DNA of 64,000 nt from contig NC_068981.1 in the NCBI RefSeq assembly GCF_001194135.2, positions 147,873,321 to 147,937,320 of the forward strand, read 5' to 3'. The first letter of the stretch is position 1. Every line of letters begins with the position of its first letter. The DNA is from Octopus bimaculoides. Lineage: Eukaryota. The notes below the pieces were generated by a model. The model saw nothing but the letters and a program-made list of their open reading frames with translations. It did no database searches and was not told the DNA's origin. The translations under genes and the position numbers were made by a program. Positions 120-61,544 of the stretch are shown in pieces.

Positions 120-839
120 ACACTAGATANNNNNNNNNNATATATATATAGATATATGTGTGTGTGTATGTCAGACCAGTGATTTGAATTCATTTCAAGG
201 TGACTCTTGGGTATACAGTACTAATGAGCTGAAACAACAGCAAAATATCAATATCCACCATATTTGATGACCTACAGGGCAATTTGTTTCATCTGGTTTT
301 CAGTTATTCAGAGGTTTTTAAACACTTGAAGTCTTAAAGGGATTTTTCCAGGACAAAATTCTATAGTTAATAAGCATAAAAATAAAATGCATACATTACA
401 CACACACACACATTATAGTCTCTTTCTGTGAAATGTTCTGTGAAAGAACATTTTCTATTCTTCAGAATACATGCCTGTAGACAGGAAAAGAAGATGTTTG
501 CTTTTGATAAACGATAGATAATTTGAACGTTTGTCATTTCAAAGAACACCATATGTGCTGGTAGATTTAATAGCATTCAGAAAATGAAGAATTTGACAAA
601 CAGAAGAAATTTAAGAATAACACTGAAGAAATGACAAAAGAGTGGAAATAAGTTGTTTGTTTTTAAAGAGGAATTAAATGCAATTAGGTGCTCACAAAGA
701 TTTCGAGTGAGGTTCTATCTTAAAAATGGAAGGCCAGATCAGGGACGAGGGGGCTGTCATATTTGCTTGATCAGGGGTGGATGGGGTTAAACAACCACAA
801 CCATCAATCAAAATAATAAAACAAACAATAGTAAAAACA

Positions 840-1000
840 TTATTTACATTATTATTTACATTATTTACATTCGACGGATATTTGTCCTCATCTTGTTTGT
901 TGTTAACACAACGTTTCAGCTGATATACCCTCCAGCCTTCTTCAGGTGTCTTGGGAAATTTCGAACCTGGGTTCTCATTCCTAAGGTATTTTTCGATGTT

Positions 1001-1057
<57 letters not shown>

Positions 1058-1312
1058 GTTCAGGTCACTGCTTAGAATCAAACTCGTAATCTTGGGGTTA
1101 GTAGCCCGCGCTCTTAACCACTATGCCATATGCCCGTGGGCATATCTTAGGAATGAGAACCCAGGTTCGAAATTTCCCAAAGGTTGGAGAGTATATCAGC
1201 TAAAGCGTTGTGTTAACAATAAACAAGATGAGGACAAATATCTGTCGAATGTAAATAATGTAAATAATAATGTAAATAAAGTACATAATTCCTCATCTCT
1301 TAAATATAGAAT
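840..1312 (-). mobile_element. tRNA-headed, Penelope-tailed non-autonomous retroelement with 5' inverted arm (copy 1)
   Basis: Exact 14-bp TSD CAATAGTAAAAACA at 826-839 and 1313-1326. On the minus strand: tRNA-like head (1135-1058), (AAT)n linker, tail with hammerhead (989-840). An inverted copy of the tail lies at 1142-1312. Homologous to 60154-60526. Confidence 0.85.
905..950 (-). ncRNA. Minimal type I hammerhead ribozyme motif (Penelope-type)
   Basis: Minus strand reads GACAC-CTGAAGA-A-GGCTG-gagggtatat-CAGCT-GAA-ACGT-T-GTGTT: stem I, CUGANGA core, stem II, GAAA, palindromic ACGU in place of stem III. Confidence 0.7.
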
Positions 1313-2788
1313 CAATAGTAAAAACAATACCTGATGACCAAAAGATTATGAGAAATATTGTTGTGTGAGTTTAGTATGATCATAATATAAAGCATATATA
1401 GCTCAAGCATCAGATTCGATGACTTTTCAAGAGATTAAGCTTTTCCACCCTACACCCACACGTAACAAAAACACCTGATTCTTATATCCAGCATCCATCC
1501 AAATAAAATGAAGATTATAAGAGAATGATGAACATGCTATAATAGCTAAAAGAGATGCACACATACAACACAGCCATACAACACTTGGTTTCATTCTACT
1601 TTGTGACAATTTGGCCAAATGCCTTTTTTTTTTATCATATCTTCACATCAGCCCAAGACTTGTGAGTAACAATGTGTGTAGGTGGAAACTGGATGGAAGA
1701 TTGTATCTGTTCTTGAATTGAGCTTAATCTGGTGCCCAGTTTAACACTACCACTATCCTTTTAGAAATGTCTGTGGAGCCCACCCTGTTGCAAGCACTTG
1801 GACCAGGTCTCTGGTCTGAGCAAGACTTTATATCTTGATGGGCTGTACCCTACAGTAGCAACTTACACAAGTCTCCAAGGCCATGGAAAAGGTTATAGTC
1901 ACAGTTCTTCTTTTTGTCTAAACCATAAAAAATTCCTACAGGCACCATAAAAAAGATAAATAAGGTCTGGAGAAATAAAAACAGAGATATAAGATAAGTA
2001 AATTCAAGTACATTAGCAAAAGTATACCTATTTATATTAAATATTAGAAAGGTCTCTGATATAAAATACATATACAAATAATGCAGGTTAAAAACAACCA
2101 CCTTCACAAATAAATTTTCACTAACAAATGAAAGTAACACAGTTAGAACTTGCTACACACATACTGCTAAATAGATTTACTACACAACCATGTATAAAAT
2201 ATAACAAACATTACAAAATCAACTACAATGGATCAACAGAAATATGTTCCCAAACTATGAAATAAGCAATTTTGAAAGATGATACCAAAGATAACCAGAT
2301 CCTGCAAGAAATTATTTTCACAAAAGTAAAGTCAAATATCAGTAAACTATAATTTACTCAGTTACCAGGACAGTAAAGAAGGGAAGCAGGTTTGACCTTA
2401 ACAGAGTAGACCCTTTAGTCAAGTGACCCAAATGAAACGTTAAGAATAAAGTATTCAGATATAAAAGACTTATTCTTATCCTGATGGGGTTAAACATAAG
2501 AAAGAAAAATACAATGAAAAGAAATGTGTATATTAGACATTTTGTGTCAAATCCCCATCCTAAAATAGGGCTCAGATGTGAGTTTCCCTTCAATCCTTCA
2601 AGACTAATTCCTCTTGAAATGTTTTGTACTTATGATACAGTAACATCAAAATATTAGATTTGTGCTGCCTTTCATTAAGCTTGCTTGCTTTTGTGTTGAT
2701 CTTACTCCAGTATTGTTGCCTAACAAACTATATCATATTTTTCTTCATAAAGAAACTAGCATTGGTCTCAGTCAACTGAATTAATTAA

Positions 2789-4691: not shown

Positions 4692-5094
4692 ATGAAGAAG
4701 AAGAAGAAGAAGAAGAAGAAGAAGAAGAAGAAGAAGAAGAAGAAGACGACGATGACGAAGAAGAAGAAGAAGAAGAAGAAGAAGAAGAAGAAGAANNNNN
4801 NNNNNNNNNNNNNNNNNNNNNNNNNNNNNNNNNNNNNNNNNNNNNNNNNNNNNNNNNNNNNNNNNNNNNNNNNNNNNNNNNNNNNNNNNNNNNNNNNNNN
4901 NNNNNNNNNNNNNNNNNNNNNNNNNNNNNNNNNNNNNNNNNNNNNNNNNNNNNNNNNNNNNNNNNNNNNNNNNNNNNNNNNNNNNNNNNNNNNNNNNNNN
5001 NNNNNNNNNNNNNNNNNNGAAGAAGAAGAAGAAGAAGAAGAAGAAGAAGAAGAAGAAGAAGAAAATGATGACGATGATGATGATGATGATGATG
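4692..5094. repeat. (GAA)n/(GAT)n microsatellite spanning an assembly gap (N 4796-5018)
   Basis: Directly visible. Confidence 0.95.
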
Positions 5095-7912: not shown

Positions 7913-9205
7913 GATACATTTACATTACACAACTGCACTGTTTACCAGTCCAATAGTAATTCCAGAATATCTACAAGCACATTGCATTAGATTTAGAAAA
8001 ATATATCAAGAGTCAATAAAAAAAAAAGGTTATTCACCTTATTTTATGACAGCCCAGCATGAGTTCAGAGATTCTCTGAAAGCCAGTGCCAGTATATTTT
8101 ATGGTGTTAGGCATTCCAGGGAATATTGTTGCTGTTTATGCAACCAAGCCTTACAGCTGCATCTGCTCTTGCAGCCCAATAACTACAGAGATGTAAGCTT
8201 TTATGTATGAGCTGATCAGCTAGATGACAAAGTATAACCTTTACAATGAACTTGCTCATAAAAGAGACACAAATAATTGGATTGTAATTAGATGGAACTT
8301 CAAAACCCAGGTATTTTTTATTGTAAGTGTGATGCTGCTTTCAAGATATCTGTGGGGAGATTTTTTTTTTAAGATTAGGAAGAAGGTTATCAGAGGTGGA
8401 TGATTATATAAGAAAAGAATTTCTCTAAATTCTTTCCATCAGAGAAATCTAAGTTGTTTAGACTTGATAAAATATCTGACAGGCATGATTGCTCTTTTAT
8501 GTGTTTATAGTCATAAACCAAGAACACTATTTTTGAAGAACGCAGATTTCTTTGTGTGATATTTCAAGAATGTTGGGGTGTAATAAGTGTCAAGCGAGTG
8601 CAATTATTGTCATATTAATTAATGAGATTATTTTACCTGTAAGACCAACAAATGATAATAGCATCGAAACAAAGGAACAAGAAATTGTCCACAGTAACTC
8701 AATGTGCTAGAAATAAGAGCCAAACCTCCCTTAATTTACAACCTACCATCTCAAATAAAGTGAGGTAAAATGGACAGTTTAGTCATCATTGTAATCCCTT
8801 GAATACAAAAAAATGTGAGGATCATGGTTGAAATACCTTTAATCAAAGCTCCCATGGATCAGGGATAACCAGGTGTTCATTAACAACATTGATAACGATG
8901 CCAGTACTAGGGTTGAGTACCAGAGAGGAATAATTGTTTTAAGTTATCAGGAAAATGTTAGTAATGCTAATTTTATGGCTTCTGTTTCAGTTATCATAGA
9001 TAATGAAAATTAGAGCAATAGGGAAATACAAAGTTGAAATAAAGAAGGTTTAATATATTCTTGTTCAAAAGAAAAAAAGAAAACTTCCAACAAACAACAC
9101 TACACATGTTTCATTTAAACCTCACATAGATTAAACGGAAAGTAAGCAGACAATTCCCTTACTATTTCTATATGCATGCTGTGAAGAATGAAAGGAGTTG
9201 AAATA

Positions 9206-10062
9206 CAGGGTGTCCCCAAAGTCACTGATGGGTTTTAATTTTTAATAACTTCCTTAACTGTATAAATAAATGCATGAAATTTTGATACAATATAAAAGAT
9301 ATGATGGAAATTAATATGCACAAGTCAAATTTTGCAACACCACTACATCATATATGAAAAATGACATTACTTAAATGGCAGTCATTTTTGGCTTCGCATG
9401 CCAGTGCTCTTTCCAAAACTTGCATCATAACACCTTCAAGAGTTTCAGACCCCACTTCTCTGATTTCTGCATTGATATTCTCCTTCAGTTGCATCAGGGT
9501 CACCAATATGTTGACATAAACCCTCTCTTTCAAGTATCCCCACGAAAAAAATCCAGGCTAGTCAAGTCTGAGGAATGTGAAGGCTATTCAGAGTAGACCT
9601 CACACATGGTTCCAGCAGGATGGGGCAACTTCTCATACCACAAGAGAAACAATGCAGTTGTTACAGCAGTGCTTTGGAGAGAGAATAATCTTCTGATACG
9701 GCAATATCAACTGGCCTTCACATTCCCCAGACTTGATTAGCCAGAGAGGGTTTACATCAACAAACCAGAGACCGTGATGCAACTGAAGAACATCAACTGA
9801 GAAATCAGAGAAGTGGGGTCTGAAACTCTTGAGGGTGTTATGGTGCAAGTTTTGGAAAGAGCACGGGCATACAAAGCTGAAAATGGCTGCCATTTAAGCG
9901 ATGTCCTTTTTCATGTGTGATGTAGTGGTGTTGCAAAATTTGACTTGTGCATATTAATTCCCATTATGTCCTTTATATTGTATCAAAATTTCATGCATTT
10001 ATTTGTAAAGTTAAAGAAATTAATAAAAATTGAAACCCATCAGTGACTTTTGGGACACCCTG
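9206..10062. mobile_element. Fold-back non-autonomous Tc1/mariner element, DD41D (rosa-type), made of two inverted 3' ends
   Basis: TA-CAGGGTGTCCC...GGGACACCCTG-TA with arms of about 380 bp. Transposase remnant WFQQDGATSHT...WPSHSPDL on +, and DLTSLDFFSWGYLKERVY on -. The reconstructed D2-D3 spacing is 41 aa. Confidence 0.9.
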
Positions 10063-11829
10063 TACTGCATCTTATGTTAACATGCACCTACATTCTGTAG
10101 TAATTCCTCATCACCACCTTCCTTGCTGCTTTCTTTGTTCAAACCTTTTGCAGTTTAATAGTAACTTAATAGCAACTCCTGACTCAGCATCTTACTTCCT
10201 AGAACATCACTTTACAGGCTTATACTCTGTTTATGATTTTTTTTTCTTTTGCACTGCTATGGAATAAAAATAACATATAGTTTTGTGAAATGAATACACA
10301 TAAAATTATTCCTATTTTGTGTTCCAATGTTCATTTTAAGCTTGAATAACTTTGTTAAGCAGTAACTACTATTAGTTCTTCTCTGCCAATGAAACTCAGT
10401 TCTGCCTGATGAATTCAGCTTTATATCTTCTGCTTTCCCTGCCCACATTCTAAAACACCCTTCTCTAATGAATTGTGCTGGAACACAATACAAGTCATAA
10501 AATTACTTCTTTCTAATTACCGAGCTAAAACTATTAAATAGCTGTAAAAAAAATAGAAGCAAAGTTTAATAAAATTTTAATTGTCTTTGAAAAATGAAAA
10601 AAAAAAAAGATAAATAAATATAGTAATTATTAAAAAAATAATAATAAAACAGGCTAAAATTTCTGACTGAATGAGATGATTTCTATTTCTTGCCAGATCA
10701 AAGCAAATTTATGTTGTTAATTCATAGAAGCCCATTGTTTTATTATTAGATTGTTTGCAGAGTGCTTTCATAGTGTAAAAAATTGTTGGGTTTATTTTTC
10801 TCAATATAGTCTTAATTTTTTTTTTTTATTATAATAGAAAGGAAGAGATATTTATATCAGAAACAAGATAGCAAGGTGACAAAAATTTATAAGAAGGGGT
10901 GTTCATTCATTTTCAAAGGACTAATAAAAAGAAAATGGCTATTTATATGAAGAGTGTGACAGCAAGAAACAGTCAGTTGTCCCTTACTGAAAAAGTTAAA
11001 TAGCAGGGAAAAAAAATTTGAAATGTAAGACATAAATAGAAATAATTAATATTTATCTGTAAAGAGAAATAACAAGAAGGAATGGTTGTTTATCCAACAT
11101 GAGACAGCAAGCAGAAAATATATTTACATGAAAAGACAGCCAGCAAGATAAGATAGTTTCTTTTTTACATTACAGGAGAGTTTGAAAAAAATTTCTTGTG
11201 TTTTCTTTGAGATGAATGACAGCAGACACAACAGAGAGGATGATGATAAAAACAAAGTAAAGAAAACTCCATTTTTGCTTAACCCTTTCCTGACTTTTTT
11301 TTCTAATAAGTAGACTGCCAGTGTTTCAATTAGATTCTCAAAAGAATCAAGGTTTGGAGAGTTCAGTTAAATATCTGTAACTTTATATATTGGCATATAT
11401 TGTCGGTCTTGACCAACTGGAATATCTAGTCACATTTATGTCATAATAAAATCAACCTACATTTTAATTTTATTACAAATGCTTTATAGCACGGGTCACC
11501 TCAGGTGGATTTGTTAAGAAGAAAATTATTTATCTAAACAAGCTCCTCTTTCTAACACAGAAACCTAATTTGGTGAAATTGTCCTTTTATGTTTAAGAAT
11601 TTAATGACATGGCACTACTTCTTTAGAACTACCAATAACAACGTACAAGGGAATGTGAAGGGATATTTTGTATAGTTCATTGTGGAGCAATGAACAAAAA
11701 TTTCAATAAAATCTGAAGATTAATTTGAACGAGTCAATAAAACCAAGCAAAAGCAAAAGTTACTGTTGCTGTTATTTAGACTCAAATCAGCTTTAATTGA
11801 ATAACTCCATGATCAAAGACCTCTTTTAT

Positions 11830-13259: not shown

Positions 13260-13293
<34 letters not shown>

Positions 13294-13443
13294 GTTTAAC
13301 GTCCGCTTTCCATGCTAGCATGGGTTGGACGACTTGACTGAGGACTGGTGAAACCGGATGGCAACACCAGGCTCCAATCTAAATTTGGCAGAGTTTCTAC
13401 AGCTGGATGCCCTTCCTAACGCCAACCATTCAGAGAGTGTAGT
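13260..13443 (-). mobile_element. Young RTE 3' end fragment
   Basis: Nearly identical to 27400-27565. Confidence 0.85.
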
Positions 13444-13496: not shown

Positions 13497-13912
13497 TTAC
13501 TCTCTTTTACTCTTTTACTTGTTTCAGTCATTTGACTGTGACCATGCTGGAGCACCGCCTTTAGTCGAGCAAATCGACCCCAGGACTTATTCTTTGGAAG
13601 CCTAGTACTTATTCTATTGGTCTCTTTTTGCCAAACTGCTAAGTTACGGGGATGTAAACACACCACCATCGGTTGTCAAGCGATGTTGGGGGAACAAACA
13701 CAGACACACAAACATATACACACACATATACACATATATACATATATATGACAGGCTTCTTTCAGTTTCCGTCTACCAAATCCACTCACAAGGCTTTGGT
13801 CAGCCCGAGGCTATAGTAGAAGACACTTGCCCAAGGTGCCACGCAGTGGGAATGAACCCAGAACCATGTGGTTGGTAAGCAAGCTACTTACCACACAGCC
13901 ACTCCTGCGCCT
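13497..13912 (-). mobile_element. SINE-A, full length, low divergence
   Basis: tRNA-like head (GGCTGTGTGGTAAGTAGC...GGGTTCATTCCC), CTTGGGCAAGTG core, internal (TA/CA)n, (GTAAAAGA)n tail. Confidence 0.9.
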
Positions 13913-14011
13913 ATGTGCAAAACAAATAATCTTGCTGTGAAATGAAAAATCTCAGAGGATATACAGCAAGTTGTACATAGAACAAACAAACGTCGAAAGG
14001 AGCCTCTACAT

Positions 14012-21082: not shown

Positions 21083-21958
21083 CAGGGTGCGATGGGTAAA
21101 TTGTTGCCATTTTATGGCTTTAATTTCGCACGTGCACATTGTTTGTTTTTGATTTTATCAACTACACTGTATAGTAGAGTCAGTTGGGCACTGTCTGTGA
21201 GAAAAACAGCACTATGACGCAATTCACTCTGCCAGAAATTTGGAAACAAAAAGCTGTACTGCTTGGCATTCACATCCGAAGCTTCAATATGAACATTTCA
21301 GAGTGTTTGGTGCCAATCTGAGGGCAGTGCATGTACCGAGAGTGATAAAAATCAAACATTCACTCAACATCATGGTATTTGGAGTGATCACTTGTGATGA
21401 TGATGTTATGCCTCCATTCATCTTCGCACATGGCCTCAAACTCAACACAGAGGCTTACATCAAGTACCTGGAGGAGGTAGTGCTGCCCTGGGTCAAGAGG
21501 GTGGCTACTGGAGGACCCTATGTCTGGCAATGGGACTCTGCCCCATGCCACACAAGCAGGAGAACCCAGTCACGGCTGTCAAACAATTTCTGTAACCACA
21601 TCACCCGTAACATCTTGCCACCTAACTCTCCAGACTGCAACCCCTTGATTATTATGTGTGGGCCACAGTTGAACTAGAGACCAACAAAACTCCTTGTAAC
21701 ACCAAAGATGAACTGAAGGCAAGCATTATAGCAGCATTCACCAACTTAAACAAGGAGACCGTCCACAAGAGCTGCAGGAGATTCTGAAGTCATCTGGAGG
21801 GTGTGGTTGAAGCCAATGACGATTTTATTGAATAAATTTACTCTTTAGTATTTCAAGATATGTTTATGTAAATTTGGTAAATATATCTGTTAAAATGAGA
21901 TGTCAGTGTTATTTTCATTTTTGCACAATTTAGATGACAGTTTATTCACCGCACCCTG
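21083..21958 (+). mobile_element. Internally deleted DD37D (maT-type) Tc1/mariner element
   Basis: Imperfect TIRs CAGGGTGCG...CGCACCCTG with TA on the left. ORF 21240-21677 contains MVFGVIT, PYVWQWDSAPCHTS and PPNSPDCNPL(D), giving 37 aa between D2 and D3 across a frameshift. Confidence 0.9.
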
Positions 21959-27376: not shown

Positions 27377-27399
27377 ATCTAATTGACTGACTATATATA

Positions 27400-27586
27400 T
27401 CATCATCATCATCATCGTTTAACGTCCGCTTTCCATGCTAGCATGGGTTGGACGATTTGACTGAGGACTGGTGAAACCGGATGGCAACACCAGGCTCCAA
27501 TCTAATTTGGCAGAGTTTCTACAGCTGGATGCCCTTCCTAACGCCAACCACTCAGAAAGTGTAGTGGGTGCTTTTACGTGTCATTC
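27400..27586 (-). mobile_element. Young RTE 3' end fragment
   Basis: Nearly identical to 13260-13443; (CAT)n tail. Confidence 0.85.
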
Positions 27587-40769: not shown

Positions 40770-41011
40770 NNNNNNNNNNNNNNNNNNNNNNNNNNNNNNN
40801 NNNNNNNNNNNNNNNNNNNNNNNNNNNNNNNNNNNNNNNNNNNNNNNNNNNNNNNNNNNNNNNNNNNNNNNNNNNNNNNNNNNNNNNNNNNNNNNNNNNN
40901 NNNNNNNNNNNNNNNNNNNNNNNNNNNNNNNNNNNNNNNNNNNNNNNNNNNNNNNNNNNNNNNNNNNNNNNNNNNNNNNNNNNNNNNNNNNNNNNNNNNN
41001 NNNNNNNNNNN
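40770..41011. other. Assembly gap flanked by (TA)n and (GA)n
   Basis: N-run. Confidence 1.
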
Positions 41012-45583: not shown

Positions 45584-46689
45584 CTCTATGTGATTGCTTG
45601 ACTTGATAGAAACAGCAGTTAGCTTTTCCTATAATGCATCATATCTTAAAAAATGCAGGACAACACATTGGGTAAAGTAGTCTAGGGATTCACTCAGGTT
45701 AGATGGTGTAGAGAGCACATGTCTTGACTGTCACATTGTACCTCTATATGATTCTTTACTGCTTATTAGAGTGAGTGTCATAATTCTTGCCTGGGTGAAG
45801 ACATAATGTAACTAGAAAAACCAAATATGAGTGCCATTCCAGATATGTATGTGCCAACTACCAATAGGCTACCTGATCGGAGCTGACCTAGGGTTATATA
45901 ATAACAACATCATCCCTAATAATCTTCTTTGTCACCCTATACTAAGCTTCATATACCAAGAACAGTTCACTCTTAGCAATTTTAAAACAAAAAACTCATG
46001 TGCTCATTTGTTACCTTTAGAAATATTTAATAGTCTTCATTTTCTTTTTCTTTGCTTTTTTTGGCCAATTCCACTATTATTGGAAAGAAATAATAAACAA
46101 TTTTATTACTGAAGACCAAAACAACAATTTGATAGTTCTTTTTGAATTTGTTTTATTGAATTTTTCTTCAAAATCCACTTTATTAGCTACCTTCAACATA
46201 AACCAATCTAAATAAATAAATTTAAAAAAGTCTACAAGTTACCATAATTGTGTTCATCAATTCATCACACACCAGCTTATTGATTATGGTTCTAAAATTA
46301 TTCCAACCAAACTACACTTATATGAAATCATTTAATTAAAAAACATATTTCTCAGTAAAAATACTTAAATTGTATAAATATTAAGAAGAAAAAAAATTAG
46401 TTTAAAACCCCTTGAATATTCAGTCTTCCATCAGTATGTATCTACTTTGTCATAATTTCACATAAAGATATTTTTAAGCTTTAATGAGTATAAACAATCA
46501 ATTTCAATGTCTGGCTGAAATTAGGAATTTTATGACTGAAGAATTTTCCTTGAAAATAATAACAAAATAGGAAAGAACTCTCCATCACGTTTCATTTGCG
46601 TGTAAATAACTGATATTTGTCTAAATTTGTAAAATAAGTTTTCTGATGCTTTGAGCAGAGAATTTTTTCTGGGAAGAGAGTCAGTCTAG

Positions 46690-47552
46690 ATAAGATGCAG
46701 TTTGGGTTCATGCTAGGGAAAAGCACCACTGATGCTATATTTCTGGTAAGACAGCTGCAAGAGAAATACCTAGCTAAAGATAAACCTCTGTACTTGGCTT
46801 TCGTTGACATGGAGAAAGCCTTTAACAGGGTCCCCCAATCACTTATCTGGTGGTCAATGAGGAAACTAGGCATAGATGAATGGTTAGTGAGAGCTGTGCA
46901 AGCCATGTACAGGGATGCTGTCAGTAGAGTGAGGGTTGGCAACGAGTACATTGAAGAATTCTGAGTAGGGGTAGGGGTCCACCAAGGATCAGTCCTCAGT
47001 CCCCTCTTATTCATCATAGTCCTGAGTCACTATCAGAACTAGAGGAAAAGTTTCTGGTGTGGAAGCAAGGATTAGAATCGTAGGTCCTTAGAGGCAACCA
47101 AGCTAAAACCAAAGTCTTAATAAGTAGGAAGGCAGACAAACCACAAATGTCTTCAGGTAGATGGCCCTGCTCGATCTGTAGAAAAGGCGTAGGTAGAAAC
47201 TCCATAGGATGTATCCAGAGTATGATCATTGCCAGTGCCGCCTTACCGGCACGTAAAAAACAACATTCGAGTGTGGTTGTTGCCAGTGCCACCGGACTGG
47301 CTCCCATGCAGGTAGCACATAAAAACACCTTTTGAGCGTGGTCGTTGCCAGAACCGCCTGACTGGCTTTCGTGCTGGTGGCACGTAAAAGCACTCACTAC
47401 ACTCTCAGAGGGTTGGCATTAGGAAGGGCATCCAGCTGTAGAAACTTTGCCATATCAGACTGAGCCTGGTGCAACCTCTAGCTCACCAGTCCTCAGTCAA
47501 ATTGTCCAACCCATGCCAGCATGGAAAGCGGACAGTAAACGATGATGATGAT
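46690..47552 (+). mobile_element. RTE-clade LINE remnant: reverse transcriptase fragments plus 3' UTR and (GAT)n tail
   Basis: QFGFMLGKSTTDAIFLVRQLQEKY...FVDMEKAFNRVP...GVHQGSVLSPLLFII, then WKQGLES and RWPCSICRKGVGRNS; stops and internal deletions; the YADD region is missing. Confidence 0.9.
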
Positions 47553-50690: not shown

Positions 50691-51400
50691 ACAATTCTGA
50701 ATATGAAAACTGTTTCTAAAAGTCATGGGAGTTGCACTGTTTTGTTTGATTTTATAAACATATTCATGAACGAAATCCTAAATTTACAAAGTTGACCAAA
50801 AATGTTGTTGGAGAGATGAAGGGTGGGCTTCAACTAAGGTGCTGGACATCAAAGCTTTAGTGTGTTGATACCCAAAGAAGCAAAATGTTCAGAAAGTGAC
50901 TGACAGAAGGTATTTGTCTGAACAGGTTACTGCAGATTGATATTTTGGACATAATAGGGAATCCAGATTAGAGAATCAGATTATAATTACACACATTTAA
51001 CAATAGCATTTTGTTTAATACCATATTATTAGCATTGAGTGTCAGACAAAATGCCTTATGGCATTTTTCCCTGGTCTTTAAATTCTGAGTTCAAATCCTG
51101 TCAAGGCCAAATTTGCTTTTCATCTTTCTGGGATCAATGAAATAAGCACTAGTCAAGTACTGGGGTTGATATAATCAACTATTCTTCCCCCACCCCACCA
51201 ATCCACCACAAAAAAATAATGTCAGACTTTGTGCTTATGGTAGAAATAATTATTAGCTCAAGGTCAAGCTAAAAGTGCTTTTGTAAAAGTTGAATTGGTA
51301 TGGCAAACAGCAATATCACTCAAATTTATATTCCATCTTAAACAACACAAAAACGAACAACGATAAAAAAAATTCTGAATGATTGGATATAATCATACCC

Positions 51401-51776
51401 CTGTGGTGGCACAATGGCCCAGTGGTTAGGGCAGCGGACTCGTGGTCATAGGATCGTGGTTTCGATTCCCAGACCAGGCGTTGTGAGTGTTTATTGAGCG
51501 AGAACACCTAAAGCTCCACAAGGCTCCGGTGAACCCTGCTGTACTCTTTCACCACAACTTTCTCTCACTCTTACTTCCTGTTTCTGTTGTGCCTGTAATT
51601 CAAAGGGTCAGCCTCGTCACACTGTGTCACACTGAATATCTCCGAGAACTACATTAAGGGTACACGTGTCTGTGGAGTGCTCAGCCACTTGCACGTTAAT
51701 TTCACGAGCAGGCTGTTCCGTTGATTGGATCAACTGGAACCTTCGACGTCATAAGTGACGGAGTGCCAACAACAAC
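51401..51776 (+). mobile_element. SINE-C, full length, with 10-bp TSD
   Basis: TSD AATCATACCC at 51391-51400 and 51777-51786; A-box TGGCCCAGTGG and B-box GTTTCGATTCC; (CAA)n tail. Confidence 0.9.
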
Positions 51777-59600: not shown

Positions 59601-60153
59601 CCCCCACCACTGCTTGACAAGGCCTTGGCGGAATTTGAAACTCAGAACATAAAGAAGGACGAAATGCCTCTAAGCATTTTGTTCCACACACTAACAATTT
59701 TCTCAGCTTGCCACCTTAGCAGTAGTAGCAATAGTAGTAGTTATGATGATGAGGATGATTTAGGCATAAGTTTAGAAAATCTCTGATTTACAAAGACAAC
59801 GACAACACCAGTTATTTACAAATGCCATATAAATGACTAATGAAAGCAGTGGTAACAAGTATTACATGATTCAGCAGAACTGACAGCTTGTGTTTTGAAC
59901 TGAAATGTTATGTTTATTGAGCTACACTGATATCCTCCCTTCAATGATGGAAATGAAGGAAAGACAGAACTGAGTAAACAATTCAATCAGAGGTAAATAG
60001 CAAAGCTGAAGTCTTATAACGTCGTCAACATTACTCAATGTCCACTTTTCCATGCTTGCATGGACCAGTTAATATCTGTTGAGGCAAACTTTTTAGGTAA
60101 ATGTCCTTCCTGTCATTGCCATACTTCACTTATTTCCAAACAAGGTAATATTT

Positions 60154-60323
60154 ACAGTTCTATATTTAAGAGATGAGGAATTATGTACATTATTTACAAT
60201 TGACGGATATTTGACCTCATCTTGTTTGTTGTCAACACAATGTTTCAGGCATATGGCGTAGTGGTACGCTACTAACCCCAAGATTCCGAGTTCGATTCCA
60301 GGCAGTGACCTGAATAATAATAA

Positions 60324-60354
<31 letters not shown>

Positions 60355-60526
60355 AAGAAGAAGAACAACAACAACAACATCGAAAAATATCTTAGAAATG
60401 AGAACCAAGGTTTGAAATTTCCCAAAACACCTGATGAAGGCTGGAGGGTATATCAGCCGAAACGTTGTGTTAACAACAAACAAGATGAGGACAAATATCC
60501 ATCAATTGTAAATAATGTAAATAATG
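60154..60526 (+). mobile_element. tRNA-headed, Penelope-tailed non-autonomous retroelement with 5' inverted arm (copy 2)
   Basis: Exact 12-bp TSD AAGGTAATATTT at 60142-60153 and 60527-60538; it interrupts another repeat that is seen unbroken near 59150-59190. Inverted tail 60154-60247; head from 60248 with B-box GAGTTCGATTCC; (AAT)(AAG)(AAC) linker; tail ending in (TGTAAATAA)n. Confidence 0.85.
60426..60471 (+). ncRNA. Minimal type I hammerhead ribozyme motif (Penelope-type)
   Basis: AACAC-CTGATGA-A-GGCTG-gagggtatat-CAGCC-GAA-ACGT-T-GTGTT, with perfect 5-bp stem I and stem II and an intact core. Confidence 0.75.
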
Positions 60527-60652
60527 AAGGTAATATTTTCCAAAACCCAGACATGTTTTTACAGAGGATTGGAACTAAAGGACACTGCTTGCGTGATGGT
60601 GACACTCATTTACAACTATCAAGTCAAGGCAAAGAGACAGTAATACACACAC

Positions 60653-61544
60653 NNNNNNNNNNNNNNNNNNNNNNNNNNNNNNNNNNNNNNNNNNNNNNNN
60701 NNNNNNNNNNNNNNNNNNNNNNNNNNNNNNNNNNNNNNNNNNNNNNNNNNNNNNNNNNNNNNNNNNNNNNNNNNNNNNNNNNNNNNNNNNNNNNNNNNNN
60801 NNNNNNNNNNNNNNNNNNNNNNNNNNNNNNNNNNNNNNNNNNNNNNNNNNNNNNNNNNNNNNNNNNNNNNNNNNNNNNNNNNNNNNNNNNNNNNNNNNNN
60901 NNNNNNNNNNNNNNNNNNNNNNNNNNNNNNNNNNNNNNNNNNNNNNNNNNNNNNNNNNNNNNNNNNNNNNNNNNNNNNNNNNNNNNNNNNNNNNNNNNNN
61001 NNNNNNNNNNNNNNNNNNNNNNNNNNNNNNNNNNNNNNNNNNNNNNNNNNNNNNNNNNNNNNNNNNNNNNNNNNNNNNNNNNNNNNNNNNNNNNNNNNNN
61101 NNNNNNNNNNNNNNNNNNNNNNNNNNNNNNNNNNNNNNNNNNNNNNNNNNNNNNNNNNNNNNNNNNNNNNNNNNNNNNNNNNNNNNNNNNNNNNNNNNNN
61201 NNNNNNNNNNNNNNNNNNNNNNNNNNNNNNNNNNNNNNNNNNNNNNNNNNNNNNNNNNNNNNNNNNNNNNNNNNNNNNNNNNNNNNNNNNNNNNNNNNNN
61301 NNNNNNNNNNNNNNNNNNNNNNNNNNNNNNNNNNNNNNNNNNNNNNNNNNNNNNNNNNNNNNNNNNNNNNNNNNNNNNNNNNNNNNNNNNNNNNNNNNNN
61401 NNNNNNNNNNNNNNNNNNNNNNNNNNNNNNNNNNNNNNNNNNNNNNNNNNNNNNNNNNNNNNNNNNNNNNNNNNNNNNNNNNNNNNNNNNNNNNNNNNNN
61501 NNNNNNNNNNNNNNNNNNNNNNNNNNNNNNNNNNNNNNNNNNNN
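60653..61544. other. Assembly gap
   Basis: N-run. Confidence 1.

Follow-up and report, generated by a model that had tools for sequence, protein, structure and literature searches.

Our analyses support the occurrence of two independent insertions of one non-autonomous retroposon family in a 64,000-nt stretch of Octopus bimaculoides DNA (contig NC_068981.1), an AT-rich (35% GC) eukaryotic sequence with assembly gaps that is referred to below, at its full length, as the window. The two copies, copy 1 (840-1312, minus strand) and copy 2 (60154-60526, plus strand), follow the design of a short interspersed element (SINE) with a tRNA-like head, and carry a tail of the kind found in Penelope-like elements (PLEs) and retrozymes, in which a minimal hammerhead ribozyme motif is embedded. 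The explanation that we favour, to which we assign a probability of about 0.7, is that the family joins a SINE design to such a tail and was mobilised by a PLE.

Read in the sense direction, both copies are built from the same parts in the same order, namely a target-site duplication (TSD), an extension, an inverted truncated tail, the head, a trinucleotide array, the tail, a short series of TGTAAATAA units, and the second TSD:

1313-1326, minus strand: upstream TSD of copy 1, TGTTTTTACTATTG, an exact 14-bp repeat of 826-839
1281-1312, minus strand: extension of copy 1, 32 nt, at the outer end of the inverted arm, as seen in an alignment of the four arms; the direct 3' end is without it
1142-1280, minus strand: inverted 5'-truncated tail of copy 1, 139 nt, in which a 12-nt deletion takes out the CUGANGA box
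1059-1135, minus strand: tRNA-like head of copy 1, with A box TGGCATAGTGG at 1118-1128 and B box GAGTTTGATTCT at 1074-1085
998-1058, minus strand: (AAT)n linker of copy 1
870-997, minus strand: tail of copy 1, 128 nt
905-950, minus strand: minimal type I hammerhead motif of copy 1 from the descriptor scan, GACAC-CUGAAGA-A-GGCUGG..UCAGCU-GAAA-CG-UU↓GUGUU, with predicted cleavage (arrow) after 910
840-869, minus strand: 3'-terminal (TGTAAATAA)3 of copy 1
826-839, minus strand: downstream TSD of copy 1, with the first T5 run of the sense strand inside it
60142-60153, plus strand: upstream TSD of copy 2, AAGGTAATATTT, an exact 12-bp repeat of 60527-60538
60154-60188, plus strand: extension of copy 2, 35 nt, at the outer end of the inverted arm
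60189-60249, plus strand: inverted 5'-truncated tail of copy 2, about 61 nt, joined to the head via GGC microhomology
60247-60314, plus strand: tRNA-like head of copy 2, 9 nt shorter than that of copy 1, with A box at 60254-60264 and B box GAGTTCGATTCC at 60288-60299
60315-60378, plus strand: linker of copy 2, (AAT)3(GAA)n(CAA)n
60379-60506, plus strand: tail of copy 2, 128 nt
60426-60471, plus strand: minimal type I hammerhead motif of copy 2 from the descriptor scan, AACAC-CUGAUGA-A-GGCUGG..UCAGCC-GAAA-CG-UU↓GUGUU, with predicted cleavage after 60466
60507-60526, plus strand: 3'-terminal (TGTAAATAA)2 TG of copy 2
60527-60538, plus strand: downstream TSD of copy 2, at whose last three bases the first T4 run of the sense strand begins (60536-60539)

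A preliminary description of this DNA had claimed a layout common to both copies, an exact TSD of its own for each, two independent insertions and the absence of coding capacity, all of which were recovered here. The separate exact TSDs, 14 bp in copy 1 and 12 bp in copy 2, mark two insertions, and the open reading frames (ORFs) across both units are merely low-complexity read-throughs. From the head to the 3' end the unit measures 296 nt in copy 1 and 280 nt in copy 2; over about 295 nt the identity between the copies is 84%, and the remaining matches to either of them in the window involve the trinucleotide linker only. Both are shorter than about 600 bp, non-coding, dispersed and TSD-flanked, as SINEs are. 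Besides these two copies in 64 kb, the family is represented by relatives in an O. bimaculoides protein, in Logan contigs, and in 84 ORF clusters.

The tail, which does not resemble that of a LINE (long interspersed element), consists of a PLE-type minimal hammerhead followed by about 60 nt ending in (UGUAAAUAA)n. The window was screened for the motif with a descriptor that allowed a bulge after A9 and required the core boxes, a cleavable H17, at least 4 bp in helix II with G10.1 as the opening base, at least 3 bp in helix I, and a palindromic insert of 2-6 nt between A15.1 and U16.1. Only 60431 (+) and 945 (-), i.e. the two direct tails, were matched, and none of 300 shuffles gave a hit. The direct-tail consensus reads (A/G)ACAC-CUGA(U/A)GA-A-GGCUGG-AGGGUAUA-UCAGC(C/U)-GAAA-CG-UU↓GUGUU, the palindromic ACGU taking the place of helix III, and the conserved core (C3 U4 G5 A6 N7 G8 A9, G12 A13 A14, A15.1-U16.1, H17) is complete in both copies. 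Three substitutions separate the two motifs (U7 to A, G10.1-C11.1 to G-U, and helix I A2.5-U to G-U), all of which fall at tolerant sites, N7 being the one free position of the core. Cervera and de la Peña (PMC4209133) reported that the minimal hammerheads of PLEs show features that emerge beyond the search pattern used. Three of these emergent traits can be read on a single motif, namely an extra nucleotide after A9, the G10.1-C11.1 pair and palindromic positions 15.2-16.2, and all three are present in both direct tails, which bears out the earlier suggestion of a Penelope-type hammerhead in the tail. The long helix II (6 bp) and short helix I that the same study reports for PLE motifs are found as well, and the 46-nt motif segments taken alone fold as helix I plus helix II.

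The insertion structure was compared with that of real PLEs. A protein-collection search with a PLE sequence comprising reverse transcriptase (RT) and endonuclease (EN) returned 4829 PLE proteins, the top matches listed being all ENA-sourced, and four loci from one ENA assembly (L002-L005), whose host differs from that of the window and which have no repeats in common with it, were examined. An inverted upstream copy was present in all four (113, 203, 777 and 1474 nt). In L005, which has an ORF of 844 aa coding for RT and EN and a TSD of 13 bp, the hammerhead (GGAC-CUGAUGA-A-GACAGG..CUGUU-GAAA-GC-UU-GUCU) occurs in the upstream pseudo-long terminal repeat (pseudo-LTR), in the downstream pseudo-LTR and in the inverted copy; the latter is 5'-truncated, lies directly upstream, and bears at its outer end only an extension of 35 nt. 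At L005 2503-2537 and 3988-4022, this extension and the bases next to the pseudo-LTR on the far side of the internal tandem junction, among them the ORF start codon, are exact reverse complements of each other, so that the extension was templated by an RNA of more than unit length. The typical PLE, as described by Craig et al. (PMC8557442), likewise has an inverted truncated copy, a TSD, and an extension of 30-40 nt at one end.

Both octopus copies show this architecture, with an inverted 5'-truncated copy enclosed in one TSD and an extension on the inverted side only, so that the PLE-like inverted copy put forward in the preliminary description agrees both with the published account and with L005. 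The extension, TTCTATATTTAAGAGATGAGGAATTATGTAC, occupies 32-35 nt at the outer end of each inverted arm and is lacking at the direct 3' ends; its 31-nt core is identical in copies 1 and 2 and is encoded in a protein from O. bimaculoides (P0001). Over the longest stretches delimited by the repeat finder, inverted arm and direct tail are 93% complementary (103 nt in copy 1, 67 nt in copy 2), and both informative sites (2/2) group the two arms of one copy together, as expected if both arms arise from one event. A direct tail repeat or pseudo-LTR is absent from both copies; in PLEs a direct pseudo-LTR or partial tandem is reportedly common and not obligatory.

Further observations concern the joints between the arms and heads. 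In copy 1 the junction (1128-1145, minus strand) is a near-perfect palindrome, ATATGCCC-AC-GGGCATAT, in which the initial 8 nt of the head recur alongside in inverted form, resembling a hairpin or snap-back joint, while copy 2 shows a 3-nt GGC microhomology instead (about 60245-60250). Over the 71 columns common to the four arms, about 8-10 private substitutions fall in the inverted arms and 2 in the direct tails; the inverted copy could be made with lower fidelity, the numbers being too small for significance. A snap-back origin of the extension from the tail's AAGATGAGGA was rejected, since a match of 7-10 nt is within chance, while the extension does not vary from one insertion to the next and has a template in the tandem relatives. 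The read-through transcript is predicted to fold as a very long hairpin (-227 kcal/mol and z = -23 in copy 1, -119 kcal/mol and z = -10.6 in copy 2), so that every insertion of the family would be born as a former of double-stranded RNA; we may speculate that a perfect-type hairpin of 60-140 bp per insertion is double-stranded RNA of the kind acted on by editing and small-RNA pathways.

The other end of the unit carries features of a promoter for RNA polymerase III (Pol III). When both strands of the 64 kb were screened with a descriptor for the A and B boxes (TRGCNNAGTGG, 20-45 nt, RGTTYGANNCY), only two matches were obtained, at 60254 (+) and 1128 (-), one in each head, against zero in 300 first-order shuffles. 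The heads are 68-77 nt long, and in both of them the A box occupies tRNA positions 8-19, which places the beginning of both copies at tRNA position +1. Runs of four or more T are absent from the sense strand inside either copy, the first such run downstream being found 3 nt (copy 1) and 10 nt (copy 2) past the 3' end. Scored against a panel of eukaryotic tRNAs, a comparison that serves as a lead rather than a test, the heads reach 21 (copy 1) and 15 (copy 2), with a shuffled maximum of 12, and their best resemblances are to Thr, Ile and Arg tRNAs. A possible tRNA pseudogene was called in the copy 1 head by ARAGORN at 80% of its thresholds. As no cloverleaf was recognised, the term tRNA-derived rests on the promoter boxes and on overall similarity.

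Relatives of the tail were found in several data sets. The peptide translated from the tail matches a UniRef entry of O. bimaculoides with 81% identity, extension included, and also one Logan contig, and the corresponding profile collects 84 clusters of short ORFs. In another O. bimaculoides protein (P0138, XP_052825882.1, dystrobrevin beta isoform X1, 94 aa), about 24-30 N-terminal residues, GEGWRVYQPKCCVNNKQDEDKYPS, come from a tail copy, which represents either an exonised copy or an annotation artefact. Decayed relatives are present in Logan contigs of runs SRR11869384, SRR11869385 and SRR11869394. In the loci L001 and L017 a trinucleotide linker leads into the tail, as in the window copies; L017 has the extension at its direct 3' end, and L015, a pair of 5'-truncated arms, has it at both ends. 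This placement indicates that the extension belongs to the full template and may land at either end, and L017-like copies could be the sources from which it is inherited.

The closest relatives found are three loci of another animal (ENA ERZ21867824), each with 2.7 units of 129 nt in tandem and, next to them, a partial copy in inverted orientation; to these units the octopus tail is 82-84% identical over 68-70 nt:

L014, 10030-10379: array of 129-nt tandem units
L018, 10159-10511: array of 129-nt tandem units
L019, about 10011-10374: array of 129-nt tandem units

Each unit contains CUGAAGA-A-GGCCGG..CGGCC-GAAA-CG-UU, and in the arrays the roughly 35 nt past the end of a single copy form the spacer into the next hammerhead. 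Helix II pair 10.4-11.4 is U-A in the octopus and C-G in the 129-nt units, which amounts to one compensatory change. The anatomy of the arrays is that of a small retrozyme-like unit; animal retrozymes reportedly span 170-400 nt, and the 129-nt unit falls below this range. The phrase 'between a SINE and a retrozyme', used in the preliminary description, fits these results, as the closest relatives of the tail are tandem hammerhead units. The window copies have one sense hammerhead each and no tandem, and so depart from retrozymes in this respect.

The remainder of the L014, L018 and L019 loci has no match to the window. L014 was considered as a second tRNA-headed example and discarded, its middle segment being not tRNA-like in a crude test and absent from L018 and L019. 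A 19-mer scan with the tail gave 8 matches of 19-22 nt, which is chance level, a 22-mer from helix II had no exact match in metagenome and viral contigs, and a multi-frame concatenated peptide query for ORFs over the family members returned nothing.

Several results weigh against the interpretation of the copies as PLE-mobilised SINEs. Regarding the partner, a motif scan of the window revealed neither a PLE reverse transcriptase nor a GIY-YIG motif, no autonomous PLE with the octopus tail was found within the 64 kb, the tail had no significant match in the four fetched PLE loci of the other host, and no PLE ORF lies next to the 129-nt arrays, where the nearby reverse transcriptases are LINE-type. 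Regarding the motif, its folding energies are unremarkable (z = -1.8 and -1.0), covariation over 10 distinct, mostly decayed sequences does not rise above shuffles, and none of the Rfam hammerhead models, at gathering threshold or at E<=10, matched either copy. The latter negative carries no weight, since Rfam likewise misses the hammerhead of the real PLE L005. Regarding the head, only two head-bearing copies are available, the remaining relatives ending at contig edges or being 5'-truncated, and no tRNA was reported in either copy by ARAGORN at default settings or by the Rfam tRNA model at gathering threshold or E<=10. SINE heads are usually missed by tRNA finders. The earlier reading of a Pol III-type, tRNA-headed, non-coding element with a tail of the Penelope/hammerhead kind has good support in the anatomy as a whole; for the head, the boxes, their register and the lack of an internal T4 run agree with a putative Pol III unit, although neither ARAGORN at default settings nor Rfam calls a tRNA.

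These last negatives lend themselves to an explanation in which the copies are non-autonomous derivatives of a PLE or retrozyme and no true SINEs, the tRNA pseudogene being a passenger at the head of a template made by read-through or by RNA polymerase II. PLEs have been reported to carry host sequences in trans (PMC8557442), and headless tail units exist in L015, L018 and L019. However, in both full copies the sequence starts at tRNA position +1 and the A box is in register, the spacing of the A and B boxes has been kept despite 16% divergence, with the B box of copy 2 still containing GTTCGA, and not a single T4 run occurs in about 280 nt of AT-rich sense strand. In addition, L001 and L017 enter the tail via the same kind of linker, which indicates that head, linker and tail are transmitted as a unit. 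We therefore regard a passenger head as unlikely, albeit the strongest of the alternatives.

Somewhat less probable again is that the copies are ordinary LINE-dependent SINEs of the stringent type, in which (TGTAAATAA)n and the tail would derive from a CR1/L2/RTE-like LINE, the hammerhead motif would be a relic or a chance occurrence, and the inverted arm a product of twin priming. Short tandem repeats do end many LINE and SINE tails, LINE reverse transcriptases are found in the window (about 46.6-47.4 kb) and beside related units in L014 and L018, and the SINE tails of molluscs are commonly attributed to 'as yet unidentified' LINEs (PMC4758252). Nevertheless, the motif combines a full catalytic core with PLE-specific traits and was never obtained in shuffles, the tail is not shared by any LINE in the window, and twin priming leaves unexplained the duplication of the 3' end and the one-sided extension of 32-35 nt, both of which occur in the PLE L005. 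In twin priming the upstream part of one copy is inverted, with neither 3'-end duplication nor one-sided extension.

A DNA transposon of foldback or miniature inverted-repeat (MITE) type with long terminal inverted repeats is very improbable. The long arms and very stable hairpins (z = -23 and -10.6) are reminiscent of such elements, one of which, a foldback probably of mariner type, is present at 9196-10072 in the same window; yet the termini of our copies are unlike each other, one being formed by the extension and the opposite one by (TGTAAATAA)n, the arms vary in length at their inner ends (139 vs 61 nt), the TSDs vary as well (12 vs 14 bp), and a Pol III head lies inside. Finally, that a truncated tail fragment was twice placed by chance beside an unrelated SINE copy, as the density of SINE-like repeats in the window might suggest, is more improbable still, given that order and orientation are the same at two loci, that a single exact TSD bounds each composite, and that the arms within one copy share diagnostic bases.

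The PLE-mobilised SINE remains the explanation that best accounts for these data, and both elements probably parasitise a Penelope element and not a LINE, since they sit in the genome as real PLEs do. A possible route of amplification would start with Pol III transcription at tRNA position +1, reading to the first T run 3-10 nt into the flank. The tail of this transcript would be recognised by the RT and GIY-YIG endonuclease of an autonomous PLE, and staggered cuts 12-14 bp apart would give rise to the TSD. If both DNA ends then primed reverse transcription, a full-length copy and a 5'-truncated inverted copy would result, head to head, the extension being retained at one end only. Concerning the hammerhead, the published minimal motifs of PLEs show weak self-cleavage, and as dimers only (PMC4209133). 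Our guess is that the fold is kept mainly within a 3' recognition module rather than for cleavage, because a single sense copy cannot form the required dimer and cleavage would drop the last 60-70 nt.

Other features of the window were noted by inspection. The foldback element at 9196-10072 has inverted arms of 333 bp, 87% identical, with ends ACAGGGTGTCCCCAAAGTCACTGATGGG, which we take to be mariner-type; the arms encode what by eye look like transposase remnants, and the element probably represents a mariner with an internal deletion. Another tRNA-like SINE head, unlike that of copies 1 and 2, is present at about 51415 (TGGCCCAGTGGTTAGGGC...GGTTTCGATTCCC) within about 51400-51540 (+). The repeat density of the window is high, with other families of 170-420 bp occurring in many copies at 70-98% identity (e.g. 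13260-13443, 27399-27577, 13503-13913), which are unrelated to copies 1 and 2. Two further fragments, recognised by eye, share no sequence with the element: a LINE-type reverse transcriptase at about 46590-47400 (FVDMEKAFNRVP...) and a mariner/Tc1-type DDE transposase at 21240-21677. An assembly gap of 892 nt (60653-61544) starts 127 nt downstream of copy 2, and further gaps at 4796-5018 and 40770-41011 are each bordered by a microsatellite.

To our knowledge, repeat classifiers have no category for PLE-dependent SINEs, and SINEs are in practice defined as LINE parasites. In the literature, which was searched by title and abstract opening, no description of a tRNA-headed SINE with a PLE tail was found. 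The claim of a new element class made in the preliminary description is nonetheless too strong, given the precedents offered by Smα/Sjα (PMC6765202), by non-autonomous PLEs (PMC8557442, PMC6685494) and by retrozymes (PMC7761336; bioRxiv 10.64898/2026.07.22.740005). What we propose, tentatively and at clearly less than even odds, is that the family may represent the first case of a SINE recognisably partnered with a PLE, in which a retrozyme-type unit of about 135 nt, comprising the minimal hammerhead, the 3' repeats and the 35-nt extension, acts as a portable retrotransposition module under a tRNA-derived promoter. SINEs form a major or dominant fraction of the repeats in recent octopus annotations, and among recently active insertions of O. 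vulgaris 893 of 900 SINE families are unclassified, along with 31 PLE families (PMC13282606). If our proposal is correct, part of this unclassified SINE fraction may depend on PLEs, as may some of the mollusc SINE tails ascribed to unidentified LINEs, and SINEs, the hammerheads of PLE pseudo-LTRs and animal retrozymes, three subjects mostly dealt with separately, would be tied together. A clear family with a tRNA head and a PLE tail would also provide a small, trackable substrate for PLE biology, opening questions such as which features are recognised by the PLE reverse transcriptase, what purpose the minimal hammerhead serves, and by what route the inverted copy and the extension at one end originate.

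Among known systems, the most direct precedent is provided by the Smα/Sjα elements of Schistosoma, whose original reports are said to be those of Ferbeyre et al. 1998 and Laha et al. 2000, known to us through a review. As far as the relevant passages of the sources go, these are Pol III SINE-like retroposons with hammerheads (PMC6765202; SINEBase listing, PMC3531059). Like the window copies, for which Pol III transcription is predicted, they are short, non-coding, dispersed, apparently Pol III-transcribed and hammerhead-bearing. According to the same passages, Smα differs in its canonical type I hammerhead with helix III and loop-loop contacts, often in tandem, whereas the window copies have a minimal PLE-type ribozyme motif with a palindromic ACGU, a single sense copy of it, and a PLE-style inverted arm with extension. 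The tRNA-derived octopus SINEs OK, OR1 and OR2 (Ohshima and Okada 1994, cited in PMC4824008 and PMC4758252) include a CORE-SINE, given as OR1 in the pertinent passage of PMC4824008 and as OR2 in that of PMC4758252. The window copies show no CORE-like segment by eye against the CORE of MIR; the comparison with OK, OR1 and OR2 being by description only, the family may coincide with OK or another family already described.

With PLEs (PMC4209133; PMC8557442) the window copies share the build of the hammerhead, a TSD of variable length, the inverted 5'-truncated copy on the 5' side, and the one-end extension of 30-40 nt, and the distance from the predicted cleavage site to the 3' end is 60-70 nt, compared with about 51 nt in the PLE L005. 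They differ from PLEs in having no ORF and no direct pseudo-LTR or tandem, a tRNA-like head replacing the PLE body. Non-autonomous PLEs are known from Chlamydomonas (MRC1 and other derivatives of Chlamys elements; PMC8557442) and from Heliconius (short Penelope elements; PMC6685494); they are similarly short, with 3' ends shared with PLEs and PLE insertion structures, and no Pol III head derived from a small RNA figures in these two accounts. Metazoan non-LTR retrozymes (PMC7229834; PMC7761336; bioRxiv 10.64898/2026.07.22.740005) are non-coding units with type I hammerheads, for which dependence on the machinery of PLEs is assumed, and animal retrozymes have been proposed to be non-autonomous PLE derivatives and a kind of SINE (PMC7761336; bioRxiv 10.64898/2026.07.22.740005). 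Retrozymes, however, form tandem arrays from which a circular RNA is released between two ribozymes, and have no promoter head, whereas the window copies are single, dispersed, TSD-bounded and tRNA-headed, with a minimal motif in place of the classical type I hammerhead.

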